A DNA stretch of 64,000 nucleotides, from positions 186,001-250,000 of IMG/VR virus record IMGVR_UViG_3300046665_000548; one strand, written 5' to 3'. Positions within the stretch are counted from its first letter, which is position 1. Each line of letters opens with the position of its first letter. Made by a program: the position numbers and the translations under genes. Below, piece after piece: positions 3 through 62,317 of this stretch. A model generated the notes under the pieces. It was not told where the DNA came from. It was given only the letters and a program-made list of their open reading frames with translations, and did no database searches.

Positions 3-833
3 CCACTTATCGAGGGGCTAACGACACGAAGCCTTGGCGGAATAGATAAGCTGCTCATGTTTGATTGGTCTTGGGGGCGGATCGTCAACGCGTATAAAGG
101 CGAGCAGCCGTTGCTCGGTACAAACAAACCAACGGTGATAACTGGCGGAAAACCAATCCCGCCATCGTTCATTGAGAGCTTGCTGATCAACGGGGCAGGA
201 GAAGTCAAAGTCGCTTATGGAATGACCGAAGCCCCGCCACCAGTGATAGTGAAGTCTGTGACCTCGGTCGAAGGTTACAGTCGTTCATTTCTGGGCCAAC
301 CCCTGGAAGGCTGGCGTACAATCGTCATGGCAAACGGATCGCTTCTCCTACGAGGAGACGGCATTGGTTTAGACAATCGGGGCAGGTCTTTGAGCGACCC
401 GCTTGGATGGTTTATGACCCCTGACTTGTGCTGGTTGGAGGGCGATGAGATACACATTCGATCCAGGCGAACGATCAATAAACGAAACGGTCAAACCGTA
501 TTCCTTGACGACATTATCGCTGAGATGTTTTTCAAGCCGCTCGATGTGCCTTTTGTAATCTGTCCGCTTCAAACGAAAGAGGACGAAGACCTCAAAATAT
601 GTGCGTTCACGGGTCGCAATCAAATTATGATCGATGGTGGACCCACGAACCTGGAAACGATCAACTCGATAATTCGCTCCACCATGATACCCGAGTACCA
701 GATCGACCATCTGTTTCTGATGGATGAGATACCCGATAACGGTCTAAAGCCAGATCACACAAAGCTACGAAAGATTGCGCTTCAGACCATTGCGGAACAG
801 GGAGAAAAAGGGGAATATCTGGTGAAGATTTAA
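3..833 (+). CDS. Adenylate-forming (ANL/AMP-binding family) enzyme, C-terminal part; 5' end outside window
   Basis: Frame is open from the window edge. It has a YGMTEA motif, GRSLSD..GWFMTPD (A7-like) and a C-terminal KPDHTKLR (A10 Lys-like). Confidence 0.55.
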   Translation, partial: PLIEGLTTRSLGGIDKLLMFDWSWGRIVNAYKGEQPLLGTNKPTVITGGKPIPPSFIESLLINGAGEVKVAYGMTEAPPPVIVKSVTSVEGYSRSFLGQPLEGWRTIVMANGSLLLRGDGIGLDNRGRSLSDPLGWFMTPDLCWLEGDEIHIRSRRTINKRNGQTVFLDDIIAEMFFKPLDVPFVICPLQTKEDEDLKICAFTGRNQIMIDGGPTNLETINSIIRSTMIPEYQIDHLFLMDEIPDNGLKPDHTKLRKIALQTIAEQGEKGEYLVKI

Positions 834-847
834 CGCCGGGGATTTAA

Positions 848-1135
848 ATGACTCTCAGTGAGATGGAAACACTCTTCGAGAAACACGACGGGGAATACGG
901 CAAATACGACCGTGTGATACCTAAGGCCAGCGGAAGGCCCGATCTCGATGCTTTCATACTCTTGAACACGCTCTGCCCCGGTAGTGGCGACATTATTTCA
1001 GCGGCAGAGCACGACGAATTCTGGATAAGCGTTGACCCTGCCGATTTCGCCAAGGTTGCCGACGAGGGTCACATCCTTACGCTAATCCGCTGCGGCGTCT
1101 TCTTGATAGATGATGGTTTTAAGATGAATGCCTAG
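848..1135 (+). CDS. Hypothetical phage protein
   Basis: 95-aa ORF in the same orientation as the preceding gene. Confidence 0.6.
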   Translation: MTLSEMETLFEKHDGEYGKYDRVIPKASGRPDLDAFILLNTLCPGSGDIISAAEHDEFWISVDPADFAKVADEGHILTLIRCGVFLIDDGFKMNA

Positions 1136-2012
1136 CGGCAGAGTCCATCGCAGTAAGCTGGGCCTGTTCACGTCGTTGGTCAGGTACGGTGCGCTGGAGT
1201 TCTGGATTGAAGATCACGATTTCCATCGATTCTTTCTCATCTGCATATTGGTAGACATCGTTGGTGGAAGTAAACACCACAAAATCGTACTTTCCGAACA
1301 CCGCATCGCTAATCTTCGGAAGAACGTCTTCGTAAGCTTCACCGATCTGCTCACCAAAAATAATTTGTATCAGAGCGGCGCTCTCATAAAGACCCTCGTA
1401 TGGGCTCATGCGTGCGAGAAGCTGGAAAAGTTGGATACGAAACTGGCTGATCTTGCGGCCCTTCTCGTAATCGCGATCCTTGGGGCCAAACTTTACTTTG
1501 TTCTTAAGCTCTGCCAGGAGCGCGGCATCATCGAAGCGAGTCGCGTTCTGTCGGACAGTCTGCTCCATTTGTGGGGACCAGTCGCTGCGAGATTTTTGAA
1601 GGCATGTGATGAGTGCGTTCAGCACATCATCACGAGACATCTTCTTGTTTGCCGTGGAAACGAGCGGCGATCCGTTGTCCCAATGATCGTAGTTCTCACC
1701 GCATCGCTTGAACGCGGCTTTCAAAGCGCGAAGAACTAGGCTGAAACCGGTGTTCTTCCACGAGGCGTCATTGATGCGCTTATATCGGCAGCCCTGGGGG
1801 ATAACAACGCGAAACACGTTCGGGCCAAACTGAGCCGCAAAGCGTGGATTGTTTGTCGCATACATTCCGTTACCGAGGGGATTCCAATACTGCTCGCCTT
1901 TGTCGGCCGCGTGCGGGTTGAACTTATCAAAGGCAGCACTCTTCGTGCCGTGATAAAAAACCCACTCTCTCTTATTGACCTCTTCGTCAATGACAATCTC
2001 GGAATAGCGCAT
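1119..2012 (-). CDS. ADP-ribosyltransferase-fold (YHGT...GxGxYxT) protein, putative capsid-packaged effector
   Basis: FYHGTKSAAFDKFN...LGNGMYATNNPRFAAQFG pattern and a late acidic EIVIFNPE strand; TAAATA 5 nt upstream of the ATG. Confidence 0.55.
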   Translation of the reverse strand: MRYSEIVIDEEVNKREWVFYHGTKSAAFDKFNPHAADKGEQYWNPLGNGMYATNNPRFAAQFGPNVFRVVIPQGCRYKRINDASWKNTGFSLVLRALKAAFKRCGENYDHWDNGSPLVSTANKKMSRDDVLNALITCLQKSRSDWSPQMEQTVRQNATRFDDAALLAELKNKVKFGPKDRDYEKGRKISQFRIQLFQLLARMSPYEGLYESAALIQIIFGEQIGEAYEDVLPKISDAVFGKYDFVVFTSTNDVYQYADEKESMEIVIFNPELQRTVPDQRREQAQLTAMDSAARHSS

Positions 2013-33039: not shown

Positions 33040-33116
33040 TGGTAGGCGCGGTGGGATTCGAACCCACGTGACCAGGATTTTAAGTCCCGTACGGTAACCA
33101 ACTACGTCACGCGCCC
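33040..33116 (-). tRNA. tRNA-Leu(TAA) with a short (class I) variable region
   Basis: GGGCGCG/CGCGCCT acceptor stem, CGGGA-CTTAAAA-TCCTG anticodon arm, 5-nt variable loop GTCAC, GTGGG-TTCGAAT-CCCAC T arm, ACCA. Confidence 0.85.
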
Positions 33117-33534: not shown

Positions 33535-36150
33535 ATGAAATTGTCCCTTTACCCCAACGCCACAAATCTAATCAGCGGAACTGTTGCAGGTGTGCAGGAG
33601 GGCGCGACCGTGCAGTATCCTCTGTCGCTGTTCATGTCCGCATCTACAGCGGTGGCAACTTTCGCGCCAATCGATTCTCCGACGTTTACGGGAACGGTTG
33701 CTGGTATCACGGCTGCAATGGTGGGTCTTGGCAACGTCAACAACACGTCCGATGCCAACAAGCCACCTTCGACTGCGGTGCAGAGCGCCCTCGATCTTAA
33801 GGCCCCCCTGGCATCTCCGGTGTTTAGCGGAAACGTTTCTGGTATCACGGCGGGCATGGTCGGTTTGCCGAACGTGGATAACACGGCAGACATCGACAAA
33901 CCAGTTTCGGCCGCCACACAGACTGCGCTTAACCTCAAGGCTCCTATTGCATCTCCAACCTTTACCGGGACCGTGTTCGGTATCACGGCGGACATGGTGG
34001 GTCTGGGTAATGTGGACAATACGCCAGATAACAGTAAGCCAGTATCAACATCTCAGCAGAACGCACTGAACCTAAAGGCCAATATAGCCTCACCGACATT
34101 CACCGGCACCGTGTCGGGCATTACGGCTGCAATGGTGGGTCTTGGCAACGTCAACAACACGTCCGATGCCAACAAGCCGATCTCGACGGCGACACAAAGC
34201 GCTCTCGATGCGCTCACGACTACTGTCACGACGACCATTCAAGCCTCATTAGACCTTAAGGCACCACTCGCCTCTCCGGCCTTCACTGGCACGGTAACGG
34301 GTATCACTGCGGCGATGGTTGGCCTTGGGAACGTCAACAACACCAGCGACGCGAGTAAGCCTGTTTCGACTGCAACGCAGACTGCGCTTAATCTAAAAGC
34401 GGATGTTGCTTCTCCGACGTTCAGCGGCACTGTGTCTGGCATTACGGCTGCAATGGTTGGCTTGGGTAATGTCAACAATACCACCGATGCAAACAAACCG
34501 GTTTCGACAGCGACTCAGACCGCGCTGGACCTCAAGGCCAATCTAGCCTCTCCGACTTTCACCGGAACTGTAGCAGGCATTACGGCAGCCATGGTCGGTT
34601 TGAGTAATGTGACTAACACGTCCGATGCTAATAAGCCTGTTTCTACAGCGCAACAGACAGCGCTTGATCTGAAAGCAAATCTGGCGTCTCCGACCTTTAC
34701 TGGAACTGTAGCGGGTATTACCGCGACAATGGTCGGTCTCGGCAACGTAAACAATACGAGTGATGCTAACAAGCCGGTTTCAACTGCACAGCAGACAGCG
34801 CTTGATCTAAAGGCAAATCTGGCTTCACCAACCTTCACCGGTACTGTCGCTGGCATCACTGCGGCCATGGTCGGACTTGGCAATGTCAACAATACATCAG
34901 ATGCCAACAAGCCGATCTCCACCGCAGAACAAACGGCCTTGAATCTGAAGGCTGATTTGGCCTCTCCGACATTTACTGGAACGGCGACCATACCAACCGC
35001 GACAATCACAAGTCGGGCGGCCATTGGCCCTAACTATACAGTCAATCAATATAGTGCGTTAATTAATGCTCGCGCGGTCGGCCCTGTATTCGAATTCGGC
35101 TCTACTAATACGGCCGGGTATGGTTCCGTACTAGGTTCGGAATCAACTTCTGGTATCCCGTATATAGCCTTCAACTCTGGGCCTGGAACAAACGCTAATA
35201 CCTATAAAACATTAGGACTTTCAGGTTCAGTTCTCCGAGCAGACAACTCTGGTGGTTTCACTTGGGGCAGTGTTGCTACTGCTAGCGCGGATAACCAAAC
35301 TCTGACATCACTGATGACTCTTAGCAGTGCCGGAGCACTTACCGTGACTGGTGCGGTCTACGGCACACTTTTTTACGATAAGGACAATACTGGTTACTAC
35401 GTAGACCCGGCGTCAACAAGCAACATGAATGCCATTACGGGTGCTGGTGTTATTCAAAGTAACGCTAGCGTACGAGCGCCAATTTTCTATGATTCCGCCA
35501 ACACGGGTTACTACGTCCAGCCGAGAGGCCAATCGCGAGTAAGCAGTTTCAATAAGGACGTGGGAGTTTGGAACTACTCATCGGAAGGTTATCAACGTAC
35601 GCTGTATAACAATGGCGACTCTACATCACATTCTGGCGGCAACGGCGGCACTTACAATCACACGTTCATGTATCATGGCGGACCCGCCCAGTGGCTTATG
35701 TATGCGACAAACTTCTACGCGGCTGGAAACATCATCGCATACTGGTCGGACAAACGCCTCAAGAAAAACCTTGATCCTCTTTCAGACTGGAGGACGATCA
35801 TTGATGGTGTCGCTGGTTATCGATTCGACTGGAACGAATGGGGCGAGAAAATCTATAAGCCTAATGAGGATGGCAAACGAGAAATCGGTCTCCTTGCACA
35901 AGATGTGCTCGCTGTATTTCCAGAAGCTGTTGTCATCCAGGAAATGCAATACAAGTCGCAAGGCGTGCCTCGTGATGACATCAACTACGATCCTGCCGAT
36001 CCATACAAAACAATTCTTTATGACAAATTCGTTCCTGTTTTGATAGAATCGTCAAAGGCTGCTCATGGAAAACTAGATGATCATGATGCCTTACTAAGAC
36101 AGATACTTGAACGCCTAGAAAGGATTGAAAATGGCAAACGTTCCGATTGA
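33535..36150 (+). CDS. Long tail fibre with 46-aa repeats and C-terminal intramolecular chaperone (peptidase S74)
   Basis: Nine full repeats plus a partial one; SDKRLKKN...GYRFDWN...IGLLAQDV chaperone motifs; TAAATA at 33522. Confidence 0.9.
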   Translation: MKLSLYPNATNLISGTVAGVQEGATVQYPLSLFMSASTAVATFAPIDSPTFTGTVAGITAAMVGLGNVNNTSDANKPPSTAVQSALDLKAPLASPVFSGNVSGITAGMVGLPNVDNTADIDKPVSAATQTALNLKAPIASPTFTGTVFGITADMVGLGNVDNTPDNSKPVSTSQQNALNLKANIASPTFTGTVSGITAAMVGLGNVNNTSDANKPISTATQSALDALTTTVTTTIQASLDLKAPLASPAFTGTVTGITAAMVGLGNVNNTSDASKPVSTATQTALNLKADVASPTFSGTVSGITAAMVGLGNVNNTTDANKPVSTATQTALDLKANLASPTFTGTVAGITAAMVGLSNVTNTSDANKPVSTAQQTALDLKANLASPTFTGTVAGITATMVGLGNVNNTSDANKPVSTAQQTALDLKANLASPTFTGTVAGITAAMVGLGNVNNTSDANKPISTAEQTALNLKADLASPTFTGTATIPTATITSRAAIGPNYTVNQYSALINARAVGPVFEFGSTNTAGYGSVLGSESTSGIPYIAFNSGPGTNANTYKTLGLSGSVLRADNSGGFTWGSVATASADNQTLTSLMTLSSAGALTVTGAVYGTLFYDKDNTGYYVDPASTSNMNAITGAGVIQSNASVRAPIFYDSANTGYYVQPRGQSRVSSFNKDVGVWNYSSEGYQRTLYNNGDSTSHSGGNGGTYNHTFMYHGGPAQWLMYATNFYAAGNIIAYWSDKRLKKNLDPLSDWRTIIDGVAGYRFDWNEWGEKIYKPNEDGKREIGLLAQDVLAVFPEAVVIQEMQYKSQGVPRDDINYDPADPYKTILYDKFVPVLIESSKAAHGKLDDHDALLRQILERLERIENGKRSD
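33673..34983 (+). repeat. Tandem ~138-nt (46-aa) coding repeats
   Basis: Unit ASPTFTGTVAGITAAMVGLGNVNNTSDANKPVSTAQQTALDLKANL. Confidence 0.9.
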
Positions 36151-44612: not shown

Positions 44613-44687
44613 TGGAGGTTGAGGTGGGGATCGAACCCACTCGTGGAGGTTTTGCAGACCTCAGCGTTCCCATTTCGCCACTCAACC
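44613..44687 (-). tRNA. tRNA-Cys(GCA)
   Basis: GGTTGAG/CTCAACC, GAGGT-CTGCAAA-ACCTC, U73, CCA. Confidence 0.95.
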
Positions 44688-44688
44688 G

Positions 44689-44764
44689 TCAACGCGACAG
44701 GATTCGAACCTGTGATCCCCAGTCTCCCGAACTGGTAGGGACGGCCAGACTCCCCTACGCGCTG
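44689..44764 (-). tRNA. Atypical tRNA-Pro(GGG) (C33, A37, G38; no encoded CCA)
   Basis: CAGCGCG/CGCGTTG, A73, CCAGT-TCGGGAG-ACTGG, ACAGG-TTCGAAT-CCTGT. Confidence 0.75.
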
Positions 44765-44772
44765 TAACTCAA

Positions 44773-44979
44773 TTAGTCTAGCTTGAACCGCTCTGCGACA
44801 GGCAGACGGCGATAGCGCTCGATAACTCCGCTATAGAATTTGATAGCTTCGAGCGCGATCTCTCTGACTTCAACTAGGCTGTCGGCTTCGACGCAAAAGT
44901 AAGGCGAACTACTCGACATAGCCACCCAACGGCCCGGTTCGTATTCTCTGACGGTGACCGTCACGATGTTATCCGTCAT
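44773..44979 (-). CDS. HicB-like antitoxin-fold small protein inside the tRNA array
   Basis: VTVREYEPGRWVAMS...FCVEADSLVEVREIALEAIKFY resembles the HicB N-terminal domain; GAAGGGG RBS. Confidence 0.5.
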   Translation of the reverse strand: MTDNIVTVTVREYEPGRWVAMSSSSPYFCVEADSLVEVREIALEAIKFYSGVIERYRRLPVAERFKLD

Positions 44980-45000
44980 GACGGTCCCCTTCAAAACCTA

Positions 45001-45077
45001 TGGAGTCGGCGGCAGGACTTGAACCTGCATACTCCGGGTTTGCAACCCGGCTGACTAGCCATTCTCAACACGCCGAC
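45001..45077 (-). tRNA. tRNA-Cys(GCA), second copy
   Basis: GTCGGCG/CGCCGAC, CCGGG-TTGCAAA-CCCGG, U73, CCA. Confidence 0.92.
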
Positions 45078-45078
45078 G

Positions 45079-45153
45079 TGGTGACGGAACCTGGGATCGA
45101 ACCAGGGACATGCGCCGTATGAAAGCGCCGCTCTACCGCTGAGCTATACCGCC
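45079..45153 (-). tRNA. tRNA-Met(CAT), elongator-type (Ile2 not excluded)
   Basis: GGCGGTA/TTCCGTC, GCGCT-TTCATAC-GGCGC, ACCA. Confidence 0.88.
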
Positions 45154-45160
45154 GAAAGCA

Positions 45161-45246
45161 TTGTTCGTGACCCACCGGACTACTCAAAGGACCGGGAGGC
45201 TGTCCTTGTCCATATGAGAGTTTGCCTCCCGATGGGTCTCGAACAA
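45161..45246 (-). ncRNA. Unassigned structured element within the tRNA array
   Basis: Nested stems TTGTTCG/CGAACAA, GACCCA/TGGGTC and CGGGAGGC/GCCTCCCG. Confidence 0.35.
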
Positions 45247-45261
45247 CGCTCTATTAACTTG

Positions 45262-45338
45262 TGGTCAGGGTGGCAGGCTACGACCCTGCGATTTCCTCTT
45301 CCCGAAAGAGGCGGATTACCAGACTTTCCCACACCCTG
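45262..45338 (-). tRNA. tRNA-Pro(CGG) with non-canonical T loop (GTCGTAG)
   Basis: CAGGGTG/CACCCTG, CCTCT-TTCGGGA-AGAGG, ACCA. Confidence 0.9.
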
Positions 45339-45352
45339 TAACTCTGTATGCT

Positions 45353-45438
45353 TGGTGCGGCCAAGAGGACTCGAACCTCCACTCTTTTTGGGAACTACCA
45401 CCTCAAGGTAGCGCGTCTACCAGTTCCGCCATGGCCGC
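45353..45438 (-). tRNA. tRNA-Leu(GAG)
   Basis: GCGGCCA/TGGCCGC, CTACC-TTGAGGT-GGTAG, long variable arm, ACCA. Confidence 0.95.
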
Positions 45439-45462
45439 ATTCGTGGTGTTAGATGTGCTCTG

Positions 45463-45537
45463 TCAGGCGTCTCGGATTCGAACCGAGGATACTCCTGTAC
45501 CCAAAACAGGCGGATTACCAGACTTTCCCAACGCCTG
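45463..45537 (-). tRNA. tRNA-Pro(TGG) embedded in a 16-bp acceptor-stem extension
   Basis: CAGGCGT/ACGCCTG, CCTGT-TTTGGGT-ACAGG; no CCA at the normal position; flanks pair (45448-45463 with 45538-45553). Confidence 0.9.
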
Positions 45538-45590
45538 ACAGAACACATCTAACGCACGCGACTAGAGTAATCTCTTGCTCCAGTCAGTAT

Positions 45591-45678
45591 TGGTGGGCGG
45601 AGTAGGACTCGAACCTACGTAGGTTTTGAAGCCGGGAGGTTTACAGCCTCCGCCGATTGCCGCTCCGGTCACCCGCCC
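45591..45678 (-). tRNA. tRNA-Tyr(GTA)
   Basis: GGGCGGG/TCCGCCC, GGAGG-CTGTAAA-CCTCC, long variable arm, ACCA. Confidence 0.95.
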
Positions 45679-46376: not shown

Positions 46377-47873
46377 ATGTCCATTGATGATCTTTTGAAG
46401 CACTTCGAGATTTCGTATCCCACGTCCGAAGCAACGCTGCAAAGCGTATCCCCGATATGGGGCGGGGCGATTACCAGCGTCGAAGAGACGAACATGGAAC
46501 AGTTCGTCACCATCATGGAAGATGCCCAGACCGCGTACGAGCAGTGGCGGAACGTCCCGGCTCCTCGTCGGGGCGAACTGATCCGTATCTTTGGAAATCT
46601 CCTTCGAGAGAACAAAGAACAGCTTGGAATGCTCGTCACCGTCGAGAGCGGCAAGATCGTCTCGGAAGGTCTCGGTGAGGTTCAGGAAATGATCGACATC
46701 TGCGATTTCGCGGTTGGTCTCTCGCGGCAGCTATATGGGCTGACCATCGCGACCGAGCGCCGCGACCATCGCATGATGGAGACGTGGCACCCAATGGGCG
46801 TGGTCGGGATCATCTCGGCCTTCAATTTCCCGGTCGCTGTATGGGCCTGGAACGCCGCCCTGGCGCTTGTTTGCGGAAACGCGTGTGTATGGAAGCCTTC
46901 CGAGAAGACCCCTCTCACGGCCCTCGCTACGCAGCGATTATTCCTTCAGGCGTGTGAGCAGTTCGGATCGGATGCTCCGGTTGGCCTATCCGGGCTGATC
47001 ATTGGTGATCATGCAATCGGTAAGCATCTCGTGACGCATCGTCATACGAAAGTCATTTCAGCAACCGGTTCGACTCGGATGGGTAGGCAGGTTGCTGCGG
47101 CAGCGTCGGGTGATTTCAAACGCACCATTCTGGAGCTTGGCGGCAACAACGCGGCGATTGTCTCGATGGCCGCCGATCTTGATCTTGCCATTCGTGGTAT
47201 CGCGTTTGCTGCCATGGGAACGGCTGGACAGCGCTGCACGACGCTTCGTAGGCTCTTTGTGGATGTGACCGTCTATACGCCGTTCCTAGAGCGCTTGAAG
47301 GCAGCCTATTCGAGCGTGAAGATTGGCGACCCTCGCGAGCCCGACACGCTCATTGGCCCGCTGATCGACAGGAATGCCTTCGGAATGATGCAGATGGCTC
47401 TGGAGCAAGCTCGCAGCGAAGGCGGGACCGTTCATGGTGGCGAAGAAGTGGAGGTTACCGGCCGCGCTGGTATCTACGTCAGACCGGCTCTGGTTGAGAT
47501 GCCGGGACAAACTCCCATCATGCTTCGGGAGACCTTCGCGCCTATTCTGTACGTCACCGCGTATAGGTATTTGGAAGATGCCATTCAGATGAATAACGCG
47601 GCCGAACACGGCTTGTCGTCTTCGATCTTCACGAATGACTTGCGTGAGGCCGAACTGTTTCTATCCGCTGCCGGTTCGGATTGCGGCATCGCCAACGTCA
47701 ACATCGGTCCATCTGGCGCAGAGATCGGCGGCGCATTCGGCGGTGAGAAGGATACCGGAGGAGGTCGCGAGTCTGGTTCTGATGCGTGGAAGGCGTACAT
47801 GCGTCGCGCCACGAACACTATCAACTATGGCAGTGATCTCCCGCTAGCCCAGGGCGTCAAGTTCACAGTATAG
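46377..47873 (+). CDS. Aldehyde dehydrogenase family 7 (alpha-aminoadipic semialdehyde/P6C dehydrogenase-like)
   Basis: ISAFNFPVAVW, LELGGNN, GTAGQRCT, ETFAPI, GAEIGGAFGGEKDTGGGRESGSD. Confidence 0.92.
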   Translation: MSIDDLLKHFEISYPTSEATLQSVSPIWGGAITSVEETNMEQFVTIMEDAQTAYEQWRNVPAPRRGELIRIFGNLLRENKEQLGMLVTVESGKIVSEGLGEVQEMIDICDFAVGLSRQLYGLTIATERRDHRMMETWHPMGVVGIISAFNFPVAVWAWNAALALVCGNACVWKPSEKTPLTALATQRLFLQACEQFGSDAPVGLSGLIIGDHAIGKHLVTHRHTKVISATGSTRMGRQVAAAASGDFKRTILELGGNNAAIVSMAADLDLAIRGIAFAAMGTAGQRCTTLRRLFVDVTVYTPFLERLKAAYSSVKIGDPREPDTLIGPLIDRNAFGMMQMALEQARSEGGTVHGGEEVEVTGRAGIYVRPALVEMPGQTPIMLRETFAPILYVTAYRYLEDAIQMNNAAEHGLSSSIFTNDLREAELFLSAAGSDCGIANVNIGPSGAEIGGAFGGEKDTGGGRESGSDAWKAYMRRATNTINYGSDLPLAQGVKFTV

Positions 47874-47882
47874 TATAGTAAC

Positions 47883-47966
47883 GCGGGCGTGCCGGAACCG
47901 GTAGACGGAAGGGACTTAAAATCCCTCGCCTCGTGCGTGCGGGTTCGAGTCCCGCCGCCCGCACCA
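47883..47966 (+). tRNA. tRNA-Leu(TAA), canonical class II
   Basis: GCGGGCG/CGCCCGC, AGGGA-CTTAAAA-TCCCT, variable arm, ACCA. Confidence 0.95.
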
Positions 47967-50179: not shown

Positions 50180-50752
50180 ACAGTAATTCCCCTATTTGCG
50201 GGATGATGTCTATACTATCCAGAAGCAAGTTTCAAATACAGAGCGTAGTTTTCTTCAAGGTTCTTGATCGCTTCGAGGTACGGTTTTGCAGCCTCGATCA
50301 TGGCGGCTTTCTTTGCCTCGTTCATCTCATCTTTGAGTTCTTGAATTTGAACAAGCATCTCTTGAAGAGATTCGTTCTCCGCGACAGCAGCAAATTCACT
50401 GTTGCCGTGATGGCGCGAGATTTCCGCTCGCGCTCTTCTCAGTGCATCGCCGTTAGACATGATGGTCACAAGTCTCTTAGTGGCTTCCAAACCGCGTCTG
50501 GTATCAGGCGTTCCGTGCCGTCTTTGGCCACACATTTATGCCCATAATTGGTGACGGCATCCCATCCACGGCTTGCACAGAACTCGTTATGAATTTTTTC
50601 CCTCAGCGCTGAATGCTTATTGGCCGAAGGGATCGCCAAGAATAGGGTAAACACTAGAGCGACCGCCAGAGCGACCCCTGCCCATATTAACGGAGTAGAG
50701 AGTTTGTAGCTCACGCCGGTCTTAACCACTACTGTTTCTCTTTCTGTAGGCA

Positions 50753-51368
50753 TCACGCCCCCATAGCAAGCATTAGTCGATCCACGCCGACCGCCCATCC
50801 TACACCTTCCTGGTAAGTTCCGCCACCAGCAACTTGCTTTTGAGCGCCTAAACTTTCCACGGCGGCTTCGAAACCGTCCTCGACATAGTAGGATAGACCT
50901 CGTTTTACCGAATCGCTCCAAGTATAGGCCATGCCAAGCTTATCCAAGCAAAGTCGCAAAAGTTGTTTTGCTTGATCTGATTCGGCCGAACCAAGCATCT
51001 CGATGCCGAACTGGGTGAATTCGCGGTAGCGGCCCTTCTGGGGGCGCTCGTAGCGGTAGCAGCGCTGCACATAGAAGACGTTGCGGGTCTTCATGCGCTT
51101 GGACCAATCGTCCCGCCACGTCTCCTGAACGAGCCCGGTAACTTCAGGAATCAGGCACACGTTGCGTTCGCCCTTATCCTGGAAACGCCACATCATCTGG
51201 GAATTCTCGGCCCCGACTTTTTCATCAAAGGTGGCGCTCTCCCAAATGCTTGGGACAATAATTTCCTCGAATTCAGCGTCGATGAAGACACTCCCGAAGA
51301 GTATTGACAACCTTATTGTAGAGCCGGGCCTCGTCGCCGGACAAAATTCGTGTTCCTCTTAACATCAT
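50753..51368 (-). CDS. Minimal histidyl-tRNA synthetase-like catalytic core, interrupted by a +1 frameshift near 51299-51293
   Basis: Frame 1: MMLRGTRILSGDEARLYNKVVNTLR (stop at 51273). Frame 2: VFIDAEFEEIIVP (motif 1), YRYERPQKGRYREFTQ (motif 2), RGLSYY, GGG.Y, GWAVGVDRL (motif 3). No insertion or anticodon domain. Confidence 0.8.
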
Positions 51369-51414
51369 ATTCTCCATTCAGTTGCAATTTTGTGTTTTCG
51401 TGGTATTTTTAGGC

Positions 51415-51780
51415 ATGGAACCTGACGAGGAAGATGGCAAAGGATTGGCCCTGCAAGTCATAGCGGGTCGTGATTCAATCTCCATCCACGCGTCTGCTTA
51501 TGAATCCAACTTTTGGCTTCCGCATCAAGATGACTCAGCTTGGTCGATGGTTCTGTGCCCGGTCGGTAACATTCCAGGCCATTATCGAGTAGAGCCTGAC
51601 GACGCATATATCGAACTCGACGGCCATCCTCGTTATCTTCACGCGTCTCGATGCATCGCTCGTCTCCAGGTTCAATTTCCGAGGCTAACTCGCCGCTTTG
51701 ACGGAGAGAACAGGCTCTACATCGAAATCCACAACGAAGACCTTCTCCACTTTCGAATGTTTTGGGAGATGATCGACTAG
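51415..51780 (+). CDS. Hypothetical protein, distant member of the C-terminal FxxxW family
   Basis: Ends EDLLHFRMFWEMID. Confidence 0.55.
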   Translation: MEPDEEDGKGLALQVIAGRDSISIHASAYESNFWLPHQDDSAWSMVLCPVGNIPGHYRVEPDDAYIELDGHPRYLHASRCIARLQVQFPRLTRRFDGENRLYIEIHNEDLLHFRMFWEMID

Positions 51781-51824
51781 CGGTTGGTAATCACGTTGTC
51801 TTGGAACATATTGGTTCCTTTTAT

Positions 51825-51900
51825 TGGTACCAGTTGGGAGAATCGAACTCACCGTATTCCGATCCACAGTCGGACGCTACTACCATTGAGCTAAACTGGC
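51825..51900 (-). tRNA. tRNA-His(GTG), alphaproteobacterial type (no G-1, G1:U72, A73)
   Basis: GCCAGTT/AACTGGT-A-CCA; TCCGA-CTGTGGA-TCGGA; T at position -1. Confidence 0.92.
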
Positions 51901-51911
51901 ATATGTATGTG

Positions 51912-51987
51912 TGGGGTGACTAACGGGTACCGCCCCCGCTTAAACCGCTTCACAGGCGGTCCTCTGATCTTACCGAGTCTAGTCACC
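51912..51987 (-). tRNA. tRNA-His(GTG), canonical G-1:C73 type, with atypical D and T loops
   Basis: G-GTGACTA/TAGTCAC-C-CCA; ACCGC-CTGTGAA-GCGGT; T loop GGCGGTA. Confidence 0.8.
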
Positions 51988-51988
51988 A

Positions 51989-52022
51989 TAGAAAAAGCCC
52001 CCGATCTTGCGACCGAGGGCTT
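51989..52022 (-). terminator. Attenuator terminator upstream of the tRNA-His pair
   Basis: AAGCCCTCGGTC-GCAA-GATCGGGGGCTT followed by TTTCT. Confidence 0.9.
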
Positions 52023-52049: not shown

Positions 52050-52130
52050 TTATCGCATCACGGTTGGCCGAAGCCCCGAGGTATGATGCGAATGCTGGTG
52101 CGAGAAGTTCTTCATGATGGGGTATTTATA
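52050..52130 (-). promoter_or_regulatory. Late promoter plus His-rich leader peptide MKNFSHQHSHHTSGLRPTVMR
   Basis: TATAAATA at 52123-52130, ATG 52115; in frame with the tail of ORF 52050-52637; antiterminator pairing with the terminator arm. Confidence 0.8.
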
Positions 52131-52637
52131 CTTGTGGTTTGTGTCATCGTCAAGTTGTTTTTCCAATATGAAGGAATGGGTGGTTTCCTTCAGCAGTTCA
52201 GCCACGCCATTTGCGGCCGAAACCATCTCAGCGTGTCGGTCGCCGGGGATTTTCCCCTCCAAACTATTCGCGGTGCCGTGCAACCAGGATAGCGCGGTTG
52301 GATAATTGATGTCGAAATTCGGAGCCATTTTCTCGTCAATTCCCTCGTCGGAAATCTGAGCGAGCGGATAGATGCTCCTGATCATGTATGAGGCGATGTA
52401 TTCGAACAGCCACCACTGAATATCACCCCTGGGATGCTTCCATTCAAGCTTCCTCGGAGAGATGCGCCAAAACCAAAAAGTTTCGTCTTCTGGCGTCAGA
52501 ACGCTGATCCCGTTGTCGCCGTAAAGCTCGATGCGCAAGCAACCATCGAACCGTGATGCGTTGACCTCACGCAGTTTTTCCACGCACAGATTGAGATCGA
52601 TGTTTTTCTTGAAGGAAACGAATGCGCAATTACCCAT
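52050..52637 (-). CDS. Hypothetical protein whose last 21 codons double as the His leader
   Basis: ORF track. Confidence 0.6.
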   Translation of the reverse strand: MGNCAFVSFKKNIDLNLCVEKLREVNASRFDGCLRIELYGDNGISVLTPEDETFWFWRISPRKLEWKHPRGDIQWWLFEYIASYMIRSIYPLAQISDEGIDEKMAPNFDINYPTALSWLHGTANSLEGKIPGDRHAEMVSAANGVAELLKETTHSFILEKQLDDDTNHKYKYPIMKNFSHQHSHHTSGLRPTVMR

Positions 52638-52970: not shown

Positions 52971-54353
52971 ATGCGCCAGTTCATCACCCTTATTGAAAAA
53001 TTGCTTACGAATACTGGGATTACCCGGAATCCCTATCGTATTTCAACTCGTCTACCGACCGGCAAGACAGCGACCGAAAATCCCTTCGATCATGCGCTGA
53101 CAGTTGATGTGGATTCCGCCAAGAAAGACCCCAAGTCCTTTGAGCACAACGTAAACCTTGTGAAGGGATACGCCGCGATCCCGCATGATCTCCATGGCGG
53201 AAGCCATGAAGAGGTAGCAGACCACTTTATCAATCACGTCAAAGATAATCTGCTTTGGCTCCATGACAAAATGCCAGAAGCGGTTCGTGAACGCGCCCGC
53301 AAATGGTATGACGGCGCGAATAAGCTGACCGAAGAACGAGCGCGCGAGTACGGTCTTCCTCACAGCACTACTGCTGCGGTGTACGCCGCTCTATCTCCGC
53401 AGAAGGCATGGCATGAAAATGTTGCTCTTGGTGATCGCGTCCTTGAAGCATTCCTGCGTAAGCAGAAGTCTGGTTGGACCGATGCCATGGAGGCGGTCGC
53501 GCAACGCATTTGGATGAACGACCGCAATCGTCCGATCCATATGGCGATTAAAGACAAGAAACTGTCCCAGCTTGAGGATATCGATCACATTGCGGCTTGG
53601 ATTCGTACCTATGATGAAGCGCACAATCCGAACTCATATCAGACAGTTGAGCCAGAAGGCCGTCTAGGACGCCCCTATACGAACCGTGATGCTTACGGAC
53701 ATGGCACAAAGAACCCAGAGGCACATGCATCGGTGCGCTGGGGCTCTCTGGCGGAAATCGGAAAGGCTGTTGCAGCGATCAATGCAGGCGACGATCTGGA
53801 AAAGATTTCAGAATTGATGGGTGAGCGCCATAAGGTTCGTAATTTCTACAACAATATTGTCGATCCGAACGGCCAGCACGGCGATGTGACGATTGATACG
53901 CACGCGGTCGCGGGTGGCCTTCTTCATCCCCTCGGCGGAAACACGACTGAGGTTGCGCATAACTTCAAGAACTCTCTTCCGGCCGGTCACAAAGATTCGG
54001 ATACTTTCGTGGCAGCGAAGGGCTCTGTTATTAACGGCGTGAAGGGCACATATCCGCTCTATGCGGACGCGTACCGCCGCGCTGCTAAAGAACGTAATCT
54101 TTTGGCACGCGAGATGCAGTCTATTACTTGGGAAGCCGCCAAGGGGTTGTTCAACGGCAAGGGTAATGGCAAGGCTAAACATCTTGCGCAAATCAAGTCT
54201 CTGTGGCAGCAATACCAATCAGGCAAGATGAGCGCTCATGATGTTCGAGAGAAAATTCACGACTTGTCTGGTGGCATTGCGATGCCTGATTGGGCATCAG
54301 ATCAGGCCGGAAAACCATCTGCTGCGCCAGTAGACTTGGGAGGAAAAAAATGA
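52971..54353 (+). CDS. Late protein with putative HhH DNA-glycosylase-like (polyvalent-protein) domain
   Basis: WYDGA, AALSPQKAW, KVRNFYNNI, VTIDTH, MQSITW pattern; TAAATA 5 nt upstream; starts MRQFITLIE. Confidence 0.5.
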   Translation: MRQFITLIEKLLTNTGITRNPYRISTRLPTGKTATENPFDHALTVDVDSAKKDPKSFEHNVNLVKGYAAIPHDLHGGSHEEVADHFINHVKDNLLWLHDKMPEAVRERARKWYDGANKLTEERAREYGLPHSTTAAVYAALSPQKAWHENVALGDRVLEAFLRKQKSGWTDAMEAVAQRIWMNDRNRPIHMAIKDKKLSQLEDIDHIAAWIRTYDEAHNPNSYQTVEPEGRLGRPYTNRDAYGHGTKNPEAHASVRWGSLAEIGKAVAAINAGDDLEKISELMGERHKVRNFYNNIVDPNGQHGDVTIDTHAVAGGLLHPLGGNTTEVAHNFKNSLPAGHKDSDTFVAAKGSVINGVKGTYPLYADAYRRAAKERNLLAREMQSITWEAAKGLFNGKGNGKAKHLAQIKSLWQQYQSGKMSAHDVREKIHDLSGGIAMPDWASDQAGKPSAAPVDLGGKK

Positions 54354-61661: not shown

Positions 61662-61800
61662 TGGAAGACGGAATTAGGCGAACCGGGTCAGCTAGCGCTC
61701 TACCGCTGAGCTACCTAAACCTTGCGGCCTAGGGTTGGATTCGAACCAACGACCTCTCGTTTATCATACGAAGTAACCCTGCTCTACGTCACGTCTTCCA
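61662..61800 (-). ncRNA. YrlA-type Y RNA C (circularly permuted tRNA mimic)
   Basis: Order: T arm GTTGG-TTCGAAT-CCAAC, closed acceptor-like hairpin CCTAGGCC-GCAA-GGTTTAGG, D arm TAGCTCAGCGGTAGAGC, inside the shared core and TGGAAGACG/CGTCTTCCA. Confidence 0.88.
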
Positions 61801-62227: not shown

Positions 62228-62317
62228 TGGCGGAGCAGGAGGGATTCGAACCCTCGGTACGGTTACCCGTACAACACCTTTCCAGGGTGTCACAATCGGC
62301 CACTCTGTCACCGCTCC
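62228..62317 (-). tRNA. tRNA-Ser(GGA)
   Basis: GGAGCGG/CTGCTCC, ACACC-CTGGAAA-GGTGT, long variable arm, GCCA. Confidence 0.95.

Follow-up and report, generated by a model that had tools for sequence, protein, structure and literature searches.

Release factor 2 (RF2) controls its own synthesis through a programmed +1 ribosomal frameshift in prfB, in which a Shine-Dalgarno-like (SD-like) element, a 3-nt spacer and a CUU codon in the P site precede a slowly decoded UGA stop codon, after which translation continues in the +1 frame. The A-site codon is here the one whose decoding depends on the gene's own product (PMC2377451; PMC3711429). The prfB motif is CTT_TGA_C plus SD (PMC3711429), and the three features that favour +1 frameshifting are a hungry A-site codon, a slippery P site and an upstream SD-like element (PMC2377451). 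Hungry-codon frameshifting also takes place at sense codons, as at CUU-AGG-C of Ty1 and upon amino acid starvation, where a P-site CUU slips when the cognate aminoacyl-tRNA for the next codon is limiting (PMC5009743). Curran and Yarus used the RF2 site with sense codons as a reporter of decoding rate. However, in these cases the limiting tRNA is unrelated to the product, or the construct is artificial.

Canonical bacterial histidyl-tRNA synthetases (HisRS), like those of E. coli and Thermus thermophilus (1KMM; 4RDX), are proteins of about 420 aa with a class II core fold, motifs 1-3, the HisA and HisB peptides, the motif-2 loop ERPQKGRYR and an N-terminal RGT motif, to which an insertion domain and a C-terminal anticodon-binding domain are added. 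Canonical HisRS charges microhelices and anticodon-mutant tRNA-His (PMC4357726; PMC3875453), and minihelices and microhelices with G-1:C73 are substrates (PMC4357726). Engineered HisRS catalytic fragments ('urzymes') function without anticodon recognition, but these are laboratory constructs. Bacteria have two orthogonal HisRS/tRNA-His systems, one based on G-1:C73 and one, described for Rhodobacterales, Rhizobiales, Caulobacterales and Hyphomonadaceae, in which tRNA-His lacks a templated G-1 (delta-G-1) and has G1:U72 and A73 (PMC3064791; PMC3937112). HisRS of the latter type, like that of Caulobacter, charges a G-1/C72/C73 (E. coli-type) tRNA-His about 250-fold worse, with U72C alone costing 91-fold (PMC3064791), and the E. 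coli pair is orthogonal in Caulobacter in vivo (PMC3875453). Truncated paralogues of aminoacyl-tRNA synthetases with other roles include HisZ, EpmA/PoxA, GluQRS and the amino acid:carrier-protein ligases. HisZ, the regulatory subunit of ATP phosphoribosyltransferase, lacks the anticodon-binding domain but keeps the insertion region, measures 280-430 aa by the NCBIfam models and works with HisG.

Here, we analyse a locus in a 64,000-nt stretch of a giant phage genome (IMGVR_UViG_3300046665_000548, positions 186,001 to 250,000; hereafter the window, to which all coordinates refer). A sequence-only reading had described a HisRS core of about 205 aa without insertion and anticodon-binding domains, with two tRNA-His genes of opposite identity types about 460 bp away (448 nt upstream of ORF1 by our measurement), and this observation is confirmed (Table 1). 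It had further proposed that the host enzyme charges the A73 tRNA, while the phage enzyme charges the G-1:C73 tRNA through the acceptor stem alone, giving a host-independent supply of charged histidine tRNA, and it treated the break in the reading frame as something to be restored. This interpretation is only partly supported by our results. The orthogonal pair is plausible for this phage lineage, but the frame break is not damage: it is a conserved +1 split of the prfB type, placed on a histidine codon.

Table 1. Features of the mini-HisRS and tRNA-His unit in the window.
Position	Strand	Feature	Details
50753..51310	-	ORF2	185 aa; Pfam tRNA-synt_His, 2.1e-15
51273..51377	-	ORF1	34 aa; upstream of ORF2, in the -1 frame; begins MENMMLRGTR, the HisRS N-terminus
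51285..51377	-	0-frame segment of the mini-HisRS gene	From ATG 51377 (other possible starts at 51368 and 51365, behind a GGAG) through the P-site codon CUU; encodes MENMMLRGTRILSGDEARLYNKVVNTLRECL
51291..51295	-	SD-like element	GGGAG, ending 3 nt (UGU) before the P-site codon
51282..51287	-	Shift site	CUU CAU; the P-site Leu codon can re-pair on UUC; the 0-frame A-site codon is His
51273..51275	-	0-frame stop	UGA, two codons after the His codon; ends the 34-aa product made when no shift occurs
50753..51283	-	+1-frame segment	176 aa, from AUC 51283 to stop UGA 50755..50753; motif 1, motif 2 (YRYERPQKGRYREFTQ), HisA (RGLSYY), GGGTY, motif 3 (GVGWAVGVDRL)
51378..51824	.	Spacer between tRNA-His and ORF1	448 nt; contains an orphan 132-aa ORF on the + strand
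51825..51900	-	tRNA-His(GUG), alphaproteobacterial delta-G-1 type	U at position -1, G1:U72, A73, CCA encoded
51912..51987	-	tRNA-His-like cloverleaf, G-1:C73 type	8-bp acceptor stem, G1:C72, GUG anticodon in a CUGUGAA loop, CCA; G8, aberrant D loop, T loop GGCGGUA; decayed or atypical
51992..52020	-	Intrinsic terminator of the upstream gene 52050..52637	GC-rich hairpin plus U run; 5' boundary of the tRNA/HisRS unit

The same +1 split was found in 49 of 67 loci from viral and genome collections and in 51 of 65 metagenome loci. Pooled, this gives 98 loci with 83 unique site sequences, from jumbo phages, metagenomes and chromosomes of Pseudomonas, Burkholderia, Chromobacterium and Azospirillum, with the consensus CGG-AGG-NNN-[C/G]UU-CAY. 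In the 83 unique sites UU-CA is invariant, the preceding base is C or G, and the base after CA is U (70) or C (13), but never A or G. That third base is the second base of the +1-frame codon and changes Ile to Thr there, while unshifted relatives have L, F, M, V, T, H, D, K or R at that residue, indicating that the constraint is the 0-frame His codon and not the protein. At least four of five bases match GGAGG at exactly the prfB spacing in 66 of 83 unique shifted sites, compared to 0 of 10 unshifted relatives; one locus (L016; L numbers designate individual loci) reads CGG GGG UAU CUU CAU. In contrast to prfB, the A-site codon is a sense codon (CAY) instead of UGA, the landing codon is UUC instead of UUU, GUU replaces CUU in about a quarter of sites, and the shift lies only about 27 codons into the gene. 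No conserved RNA structure was found downstream of the site, as in prfB.

Several analyses indicate that both parts are translated as one protein, which in the window would measure about 203-207 aa. The most variable codon position moves by +1 at the site, with an entropy of 1.74 at 0-frame position 3 upstream and of 1.52 at +1-frame position 3 downstream, and there is purifying selection in both frames. The distance from the GTR motif to the LIPE motif is 201 nt in unshifted loci and 202 or 205 nt in shifted ones, a net shift of +1. In 53 of 89 unique shifted loci there is no ATG, GTG or TTG in the ORF2 frame upstream of UUC, and in L010 and L126 the two reading frames overlap only on the two codons of the shift site (GUU CAC in L010). 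The shifted state lies on both sides of the midpoint root of the family tree with unshifted members scattered, and is ancient on the tree. Transcriptional slippage was rejected, since there is no homopolymer run at the site. A shift with tRNA-His in the P site on CAY-UGA was rejected as the general mechanism, because in 44 of 83 unique sites, including the window, the base after CAY is not U and sense codons follow the His codon; re-pairing of tRNA-His on AUN would also be poor. The alternative site CUU-CGG in the window (51299..51294) was rejected because it is not conserved in Sinorhizobium phage Phosso or the other loci.

The enzyme is an anticodon-blind HisRS core. Alignment to Thermus HisRS (4RDX/1ADJ) covers chain residues 6-156 and 227-314, skips residues from about 157 to 226 and then stops, and the protein ends 10 residues after motif 3, so that both the insertion domain and the anticodon-binding domain are absent. 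The score against the NCBIfam hisS model (TIGR00442) is 130 bits, far below the equivalog cut-off of 286.75, and PHROGs has no family for the mini enzyme. The motif-2 loop reads YRYERPQKGRYREF, as the sequence-only reading had stated, and an alignment of motif-2 loops, which that reading had proposed as a check, shows it to be of the canonical type with the ancestral Gln retained (PMC3937112). In alignments of 24 and 63 sequences the motif-2 R, E, R-P-Q, G-R-Y-R, F, Q and E, the R-G-L-x-Y-Y of HisA and the motif-3 R are invariant or nearly invariant. The HisA peptide (RGLDYY) reads RGLSYY in the window and is invariant in R, G, Y and Y. GGGxY of HisB (GGGRYD) is present, but x is T in the window, and across 120 relatives it is R in 56, A in 28 and other residues in the rest. 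Structure prediction, also named in advance for the dimer, was carried out on P0006, an intact relative with 74% identity; the read-through protein of the window itself was not submitted to any tool and intact natural relatives were used instead, and the dimer with a tRNA acceptor stem was not predicted. The P0006 model has a pLDDT of 89.5; its top 19 PDB matches are all HisRS with TM (query) 0.71-0.86, the best ones reaching 0.82-0.86. The 0-frame segment (ORF1) is homologous to the N-terminus of intact relatives such as P0006 and of Thermus HisRS.

Thermus residues Arg7, Glu114, Arg115, Gln117, Arg120 and Arg122, which hold G-1, the 5' phosphate, C74 and A76 (PMC4357726), are all conserved. 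Arg7, which contacts the tRNA 5' end and corresponds to the R of LRGTR, is encoded in ORF1 and thus before the shift. However, Lys118 is kept in the window's enzyme but varies in the family, Thermus Glu64, reported as essential, is Met or Gln in the family, and the second Gly of the G-1 pocket (Gly72'Gly73') is Glu in the window and Asp, Glu or Asn in most members. The missing insertion domain is the one that clamps the 3' strand of the acceptor stem. The gene is linked to tRNA genes: tRNA-His is the nearest tRNA in 16 of 44 loci that have tRNAs, and in 24 of 26 loci with a tRNA-His at least one is of the G-1:C73 type.

The two tRNA-His elements of the window differ in quality. For the delta-G-1 element, the nine-nucleotide D loop with U20a expected of this type could be neither assigned nor excluded, because a C13-U22 mismatch in the D arm makes the loop length depend on how the stem is drawn. 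The G-1:C73 element was missed by ARAGORN and by the Rfam tRNA model even at E<=10. Its minimum-free-energy fold is nevertheless a cloverleaf, and a covariance model built only from G-1:C73 tRNA-His genes of related phages scores it 51.3 bits (E about 1e-10) over the full length, which is far beyond chance and makes it homologous to that tRNA class. It lacks the universal tertiary nucleotides, with U8, T54, Psi55 and A58 lost and a D loop of GGUAAGAUCA/GUAAGAUC without a normal GG, whereas the closest relative of the window, L123, has a normal one; its use in translation is doubtful. Its exact 27-mer is found only in this contig. The other 540 kb of the contig were not scanned for a second, normal G-1:C73 tRNA-His or for a full-length hisS.

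Our best explanation, to which we assign a probability of roughly 0.6, is that the two ORFs are one gene for a minimal HisRS, expressed by a prfB-type programmed +1 frameshift that responds to the supply of charged histidine tRNA. In this model, ribosomes start at the ORF1 AUG, translate 31 codons and, with peptidyl-tRNA-Leu on CUU and the SD-like element behind the P site, meet the His codon in the A site. When His-tRNAHis arrives quickly, His would be inserted and translation would stop two codons later, giving the 34-aa peptide. When it is scarce, the P-site tRNA would re-pair on UUC and the ribosome would continue in the +1 frame, so that the full enzyme is probably made mainly when charged histidine tRNA runs short. 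The enzyme, presumably a dimer like HisRS, would activate histidine and charge tRNA-His through the acceptor end (G-1:C73, 5' phosphate, CCA) without reading the anticodon, which would raise His-tRNAHis and close a negative feedback loop running through an aminoacyl-tRNA pool instead of a release factor. In phages of alphaproteobacteria that use delta-G-1 tRNA-His, it would also give a phage-encoded G-1:C73 tRNA-His its only efficient charging enzyme. The sequences themselves demonstrate the conserved split, its site and SD-like element, coding constraint in both frames, conservation of catalytic and acceptor-contact residues and the linkage to tRNA-His genes, whereas it is by inference that we take the shift to be ribosomal and sensitive to His-tRNA supply and the enzyme to charge tRNA. 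Frameshifting, feedback by the product, His activation and tRNA charging were not measured here, and there are no experimental data on them for any member of the family; sensitivity to His-tRNA supply is inferred only from codon identity, and with a sense codon in the A site basal shifting may be low or constitutive. The benefit to bacteria with chromosomal copies is unexplained, as their full-length HisRS should already serve the same tRNA.

Literature searches found no report of this frameshift or of this mini enzyme; a 'tRNA synthetase' +1 cluster in the GeneTack paper is classed there as phase variation, and nothing ties it to HisRS. If the model holds, which in its fullest form we consider about as likely as not, this would be a natural aminoacyl-tRNA sensor built into a coding sequence, widespread in jumbo phages and several proteobacterial chromosomes, and the first aminoacyl-tRNA synthetase known to be autoregulated by frameshifting on its own cognate codon; in phages of delta-G-1 alphaproteobacteria it would be the enzyme half of a virus-borne orthogonal His-tRNA pair. 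It would extend the RF2 paradigm from termination to aminoacylation, as a natural and evolutionarily ancient example of regulatory hungry-codon frameshifting, which has been discussed for decades mainly from artificial constructs and Ty1. The family defines a compact, natural, widespread and strongly conserved HisRS core that apparently works without anticodon or insertion domains, which bears on minimal-synthetase ideas and offers a small scaffold for orthogonal pairs. It also suggests that giant phages monitor and top up one specific charged tRNA and, in hosts with the divergent delta-G-1 system, would bring both halves of the canonical one. Hundreds of database entries record ORF2 only, named HisZ or HisRS, and are probably mis-annotated. 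The cassette is short and easily tested with reporters.

Of the alternatives, the orthogonal pair as the whole story, with the frame break incidental, survives best but is unlikely. Besides the published kinetics, the orthogonality of the E. coli pair in Caulobacter and the ancestral Gln in the motif-2 loop, it is supported by the presence of both tRNA types in the window and six further loci (L003, L004, L005, L007, L123 and L125), and by Phosso, whose host belongs to the delta-G-1 clade and which pairs the same mini enzyme with a normal G-1:C73 tRNA-His. In contrast to the two described bacterial systems, both sit here in a single phage genome, the G-1-type enzyme is a minimal core and its presumed partner in the window is degenerate. 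However, the frame break is conserved and patterned, and the family thrives in Pseudomonas, Burkholderia, Chromobacterium, Rhodospirillales and Myxococcota, outside the alphaproteobacterial clade that lost G-1, so orthogonality cannot be its general function.

Less likely still, the frameshift may be real but constitutive, setting a fixed low ratio of full-length enzyme to short peptide. Many programmed frameshifts, like those of dnaX and phage tail chaperones, set fixed ratios, and a codon served by a normally abundant tRNA may rarely be limiting. However, only the two His codons are tolerated at the A site in the 83 unique sites, whereas a fixed-ratio device would accept any slow codon or a stop, and the product is a His-specific synthetase, matching the prfB logic.

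It is also doubtful that the protein activates histidine for another acceptor (a carrier protein, protein side chain or small molecule), the alternative raised in the sequence-only reading with EpmA and the carrier-protein ligases as examples, or that it acts as a HisZ-like histidine sensor or regulator, with the His-codon frameshift reporting histidine starvation for that purpose. The absence of two of the three HisRS domains, the precedent of truncated paralogues, the changes at Glu64 and the G-1 pocket, and the database name 'ATP phosphoribosyltransferase regulatory subunit' for the Pseudomonas copies could point this way. However, the best HisZ model scores 58 bits against a cut-off of 271.65, hisS is the better match, and the best structural matches are HisRS and not HisZ. 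Apart from the gene itself no ORF family is shared by more than 6 of 18 chromosomal loci, so that no carrier protein or hisG partner is evident and a non-tRNA acceptor finds no support, and the phage copies lie in tRNA arrays, most often next to tRNA-His. ATP-binding, His-binding and acceptor-contact residues are invariant or nearly so, which a regulator would not need.

Two separate polypeptides, with ORF1 as a leader or N-terminal peptide and ORF2 initiated independently or by coupling, the pieces either assembling or ORF1 only regulating, are very unlikely. Gene callers routinely start ORF2 at an internal ATG, GTG or TTG, and in the window a TTG lies 8 codons upstream of UUC in the ORF2 frame, but besides the loci without an upstream start, 40 of 89 have none for a further 12 codons, ORF1 is the homologue of the HisRS N-terminus including most of helix 1, and unshifted relatives have exactly the length predicted for a +1 fusion. 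A pseudogene or assembly error, which a 1-nt frame break in a single metagenomic contig would normally suggest, is refuted by the same break at the same motif in 98 loci, including isolate genomes.

Searches of the phage collection with the region (megablast) or with the A73 tRNA (blastn) gave no match, and the odd tRNA gave only weak partial hits to Streptomyces phages. An 871-aa ORF used to look for relatives is a collagen-like repeat protein and was uninformative. The orphan ORF in the spacer has no Pfam or PHROG hit. The terminator shows a weak match to the terminator part of rteR and is conserved in L123. The spacer is absent from L123, where the tRNAs lie 29 nt from the start codon, and the nucleotide match between L123 and the window begins exactly at the A of the ORF1 start codon (51377).

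The genes studied here lie on a 607,744-bp phage contig from IMG/VR. On the minus strand, an intrinsic terminator is followed by a tRNA-like element, a spacer of 11 nt, tRNA-His(GUG), a longer spacer and two overlapping reading frames, the second of which (ORF2) is in the +1 frame relative to the first (ORF1). ORF2 hits Pfam tRNA-synt_His at 2.1e-15. ORF1 (MENMMLRGTRILSGDEARLYNKVVNTLRECLHRR) has no Pfam hit, but is nevertheless the N-terminus that is seen in intact relatives such as protein P0006 (MLRGTRIIAGDEARKYNEIISVLRGLLLGADFEE...) and in Thermus HisRS (VRGTKDLFGKE...).

Coordinates of the features described in the text (positions are those of the window unless another record is named).
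Feature	Record	Position	Strand	Remarks
Intrinsic terminator	window	52020..51992	-	
tRNA-like element	window	51987..51912	-	
tRNA-His(GUG)	window	51900..51825	-	
Spacer between tRNA-His and mini-HisRS start	window	51378..51824		448 nt; absent from L123, the closest relative
Orphan ORF within this spacer	window	51382..51780	+	132 aa; no Pfam or PHROG match
ORF1	window	51377..51273	-	34 aa
ORF2	window	51310..50753	-	185 aa
Predicted membrane protein	window	50466..50753	-	95 aa; AUG overlaps the stop of the mini-HisRS gene (UGAUG), suggesting translational coupling
Eleven further tRNA genes (Leu x3, Cys x2, Pro x3, Met, Tyr, Ser)	window	44613..45678; 33040..33116; 47883..47966; 62228..62317	-; -; +; -	
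tRNA-Leu(GAG), one of the eleven	window	45353..45438		
Weak tRNA-like hit	window	61723..61790	-	20.4 bits, E about 0.007
Aldehyde dehydrogenase	window	46377..47873	+	full-length; Pfam Aldedh 1.7e-126
ORF with collagen-like repeat region	window	33535..36150	+	871 aa
DUF7178 protein	window	52971..54353	+	460 aa; function unknown
DUF7178 protein	L123	1021..2406		
Unshifted family member beside a tRNA array	L047 (Pararhizobium sp. BT-229, NZ_JAOYTJ010000003.1)	124..1198		

Among solved structures the best matches are HisRS of Thermus, Staphylococcus and E. coli. The alignment covers chain residues 6-156 and 227-314 of Thermus HisRS, after which the protein ends, and the insertion domain and the anticodon-binding domain are therefore absent. 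An AlphaFold model of the 74%-identical intact relative P0006, built from a 63-sequence alignment, is confident (pLDDT 89.5, pTM 0.87), and its top PDB matches are all HisRS, with TM 0.82-0.86 normalised to the query. Alignments of 24 and 63 family members have a mean column identity of 57% and 50%, respectively, and show that motif 2 (Y-R-Y-E-R-P-Q-x-G-R-Y-R-E-F-T-Q), R-G-L-x-Y-Y, G-G-G-x-Y and motif 3 (G-x-G-x-x-x-G-x-[DE]-R) are invariant or nearly invariant. In the Thermus HisRS-tRNA structure, Arg7, Arg115 and Arg122 hold the 5' phosphate and base of G-1, Gln117 and Lys118 contact the 3' strand, Arg120 contacts C74 and Glu114 contacts A76 (PMC4357726). Arg7, Glu114, Arg115, Gln117, Arg120 and Arg122 are conserved across the family, while Lys118 is kept in the enzyme of the window but varies in relatives. 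Arg7 is the R of LRGTR and is thus encoded in ORF1. However, there are also deviations. Thermus Glu64, reported as essential, is Met or Gln here, and the G-1 pocket dipeptide Gly72'Gly73' is Gly-Glu in the window and, among 120 relatives, GD in 38, GG in 24, GE in 22 and GN in 17. The NCBIfam models for hisS and hisZ both match below their cut-offs, with hisS the stronger (130 bits against 58). The protein thus belongs to a distinct minimal HisRS-like family and is not HisZ. This family is large, with 1,575 proteins of similar length at E<=1e-3.

The break between the two frames is not restricted to the window. Sinorhizobium phage Phosso has the same split, although its protein is only 62% identical; its ORF1 is MLRGTRVISGNEARAYTNAIDTLRGCLHRS followed by a stop, its ORF2 is +1, and its site is CGA GGU UGU CUU CAU CGA AGC UGA, where the window reads CGG GAG UGU CUU CAU CGA CGC UGA. 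Loci were then collected from IMG/VR (41 loci), GTDB genomes (26 family loci) and JGI metagenomes (65 usable loci), together with the closest relative, L123, at 88% amino-acid identity. The split is present in 49 of 67 loci and in 51 of 65 loci, and in every one of these the 0-frame codons at the junction are [C/G]UU CAY. Pooling gives 98 loci and 83 unique site sequences, in which UU-CA is invariant, the preceding base is C in 64 and G in 19, and the third base of the His codon is U in 70 and C in 13, but never A or G. G is invariant at -11 and is found at -10 in 77 of 83 and at -8 in 75 of 83. In 66 of 83 sites at least 4 of 5 positions match GGAGG, ending exactly 3 nt before the P-site codon, while none of 10 unshifted relatives has such a match. 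Among the shifted sites, that of locus L016 reads CGG GGG UAU CUU CAU. The published prfB signal is CTT_TGA_C with an upstream Shine-Dalgarno-type stimulator (PMC3711429), and the three features known to favour +1 frameshifting are a hungry A-site codon, a P-site tRNA that can re-pair in +1 and an upstream SD-like sequence (PMC2377451), all of which are present here. We infer that tRNA-Leu(GAG) reading CUU could re-pair on UUC as U-G, U-A, C-G. The window itself encodes a tRNA-Leu(GAG), the isoacceptor expected to read the CUU of the shift site.

Several controls bear on the frameshift. In 49 gap-free unique sequences the most variable codon phase is 0-frame position 3 upstream of the site (entropy 1.74, against 1.10 and 0.84) and +1-frame position 3 downstream of it (1.52, against 0.77 and 0.56). 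The distance from the GTR motif to the LIPE motif is 201 nt in unshifted genes and 202 or 205 nt in shifted ones, and a +1 event therefore restores the canonical length. Independent initiation of ORF2 is unlikely, as 53 of 89 unique shifted loci have no ATG, GTG or TTG in the ORF2 frame between the nearest stop and UUC, and only 13 have an ATG. In loci L010/L126 an ORF2-frame UAG lies directly before UUC and the 0-frame UGA directly after CAC, which pins the event to those two codons. The His codon is not a by-product of protein constraint, since U versus C at its third base changes Ile to Thr in the +1 frame, while unshifted relatives carry L, F, M, V, T, H, D, K or R at that residue. On a tree of 99 core sequences the shifted state lies on both sides of the midpoint root and unshifted members are scattered; parsimony needs 8 changes, of which at least 4 are forced by well-supported branches. 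All 32 rows of the Pseudomonas/Burkholderia/Chromobacterium clade, isolate chromosomes and metagenome contigs alike, are shifted. A search for conserved RNA structure downstream of the site found none.

The frameshift is not annotated in the databases. Only 14 of the 120 best database proteins begin with the LRGTR N-terminus, the rest being ORF2-only gene calls. The copies of the Pseudomonas syringae group are named 'ATP phosphoribosyltransferase regulatory subunit' or 'histidyl-tRNA synthetase', at 173-193 aa, and the chromosomal copies of the family (loci L050-L068 from Pseudomonas, Paraburkholderia, Burkholderia and Chromobacterium; proteins P0121-P0135) are recorded in the same way; these are ORF2 only, so both the name and the gene model are probably wrong. 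In the literature searched, including the 2016 recoding review and the GeneTack survey with its supplements, no description of the frameshift was found. Taken together, we consider the existence of programmed frameshifting very likely.

In prfB the A-site codon is the one decoded by the gene's own product. Here the only tolerated A-site codons are the two His codons, and the product is a His-specific synthetase core. The simplest reading is the same feedback logic, in which ample His-tRNAHis would lead to decoding of CAY and termination 0-12 codons later, giving a peptide of roughly 25-45 aa, whereas scarce His-tRNAHis would lead to a pause, a +1 slip and full-length enzyme. While the split, its site and its conservation were observed directly, this responsive step is inferred and has not been shown, and we put the probability of autoregulation by His-tRNA at about 0.55-0.65. 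The inference does bear on function, because it makes most sense if the enzyme raises the His-tRNAHis pool. Other observations agree with this. The acceptor-contact residues are conserved, and no neighbouring gene is conserved around the chromosomal copies. The phage copies lie in tRNA arrays, where tRNA-His is the nearest tRNA in 16 of 44 loci that have tRNAs and the most frequent tRNA in the flanks (36 of 276), and in 24 of 26 loci with a tRNA-His at least one is of the G-1:C73 type. Canonical HisRS depends mainly on G-1:C73 and charges microhelices (PMC4357726), and it also charges an anticodon-mutant tRNA-His in vivo (PMC3875453). An anticodon-blind core is therefore biochemically reasonable, and charging of tRNA-His by the mini enzyme seems somewhat more likely than not. 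RF2-type autoregulatory frameshifting and truncated aaRS paralogues are both known; what differs here is that a deeply conserved prfB-like +1 cassette carries a His codon in the A site and lies inside a minimal HisRS gene. This is of high interest because it is cheap to test and widely distributed.

The called tRNA-His has U at -1, G1:U72 and A73, which is the signature of the delta-G-1 group of Rhizobiales, Rhodobacterales, Caulobacterales and Hyphomonadaceae (PMC3064791, PMC3937112) and points to a host in that clade. The second, tRNA-like element is homologous to the G-1:C73 tRNA-His genes of related phages, as indicated by their alignment and by a score of 51.3 bits (E about 1e-10) with a covariance model that excluded it. 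All its stems are intact. However, U8 is G, the D loop is aberrant and the T loop is GGCGGUA where relatives have UUCGAAN, which explains why ARAGORN and Rfam miss it. The tRNA-His covariance model also gave the weak tRNA-like hit listed in the table, which ARAGORN and Rfam do not call and which may be another degenerate tRNA. In L123 a delta-G-1-type and a perfectly normal G-1:C73 tRNA-His sit side by side, 29 nt upstream of ORF1, and the related loci L003, L004, L005, L007 and L125 also carry both types. The window differs from L123 by a rearranged tRNA pair and the 448-nt insertion. At locus L047, on a 1.6-Mb replicon, the tRNA array beside the unshifted family member includes a tRNA called 'His (AUG anticodon)' by ARAGORN and a G1:U72 tRNA-His with G73, which is an unusual set.

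What the sequence-only reading observed at this locus is confirmed, although it treated as damage the frame break that we regard as the most important feature. Its interpretation, that the host enzyme serves the A73 tRNA and the phage enzyme the G-1:C73 tRNA, is supported in part. Caulobacter HisRS charges E. coli tRNA-His 250-fold worse than its own, and U72C alone costs 91-fold (PMC3064791); its G-1 pocket glycines are replaced by aspartates (PMC4357726). The motif-2 loops, whose alignment had been proposed at the outset as a way to examine the pairing, differ in that the clade has Gly (PMC3937112) where others, and this mini enzyme, have Gln. The proposal is therefore a good hypothesis for this phage lineage. 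It cannot be the general role of the family, which is also found in Pseudomonas, Burkholderia, Chromobacterium, Azospirillum, Thalassospira and Myxococcota, bacteria outside that alphaproteobacterial clade. In this particular window the partner tRNA may be decaying, and a functional orthogonal pair is here considered unlikely, although whether the tRNA can still be charged through its intact acceptor stem is not decided by this analysis. Upstream of the tRNA/HisRS unit, the DUF7178 protein is the conserved neighbour in both the window and L123. Elsewhere in the window, the ORF with collagen-like repeats matches 'minor tail proteins' of Arthrobacter and Mycobacterium phages only through the repeats, and the aldehyde dehydrogenase, which is encoded next to the tRNA array, looks like an auxiliary metabolic gene.
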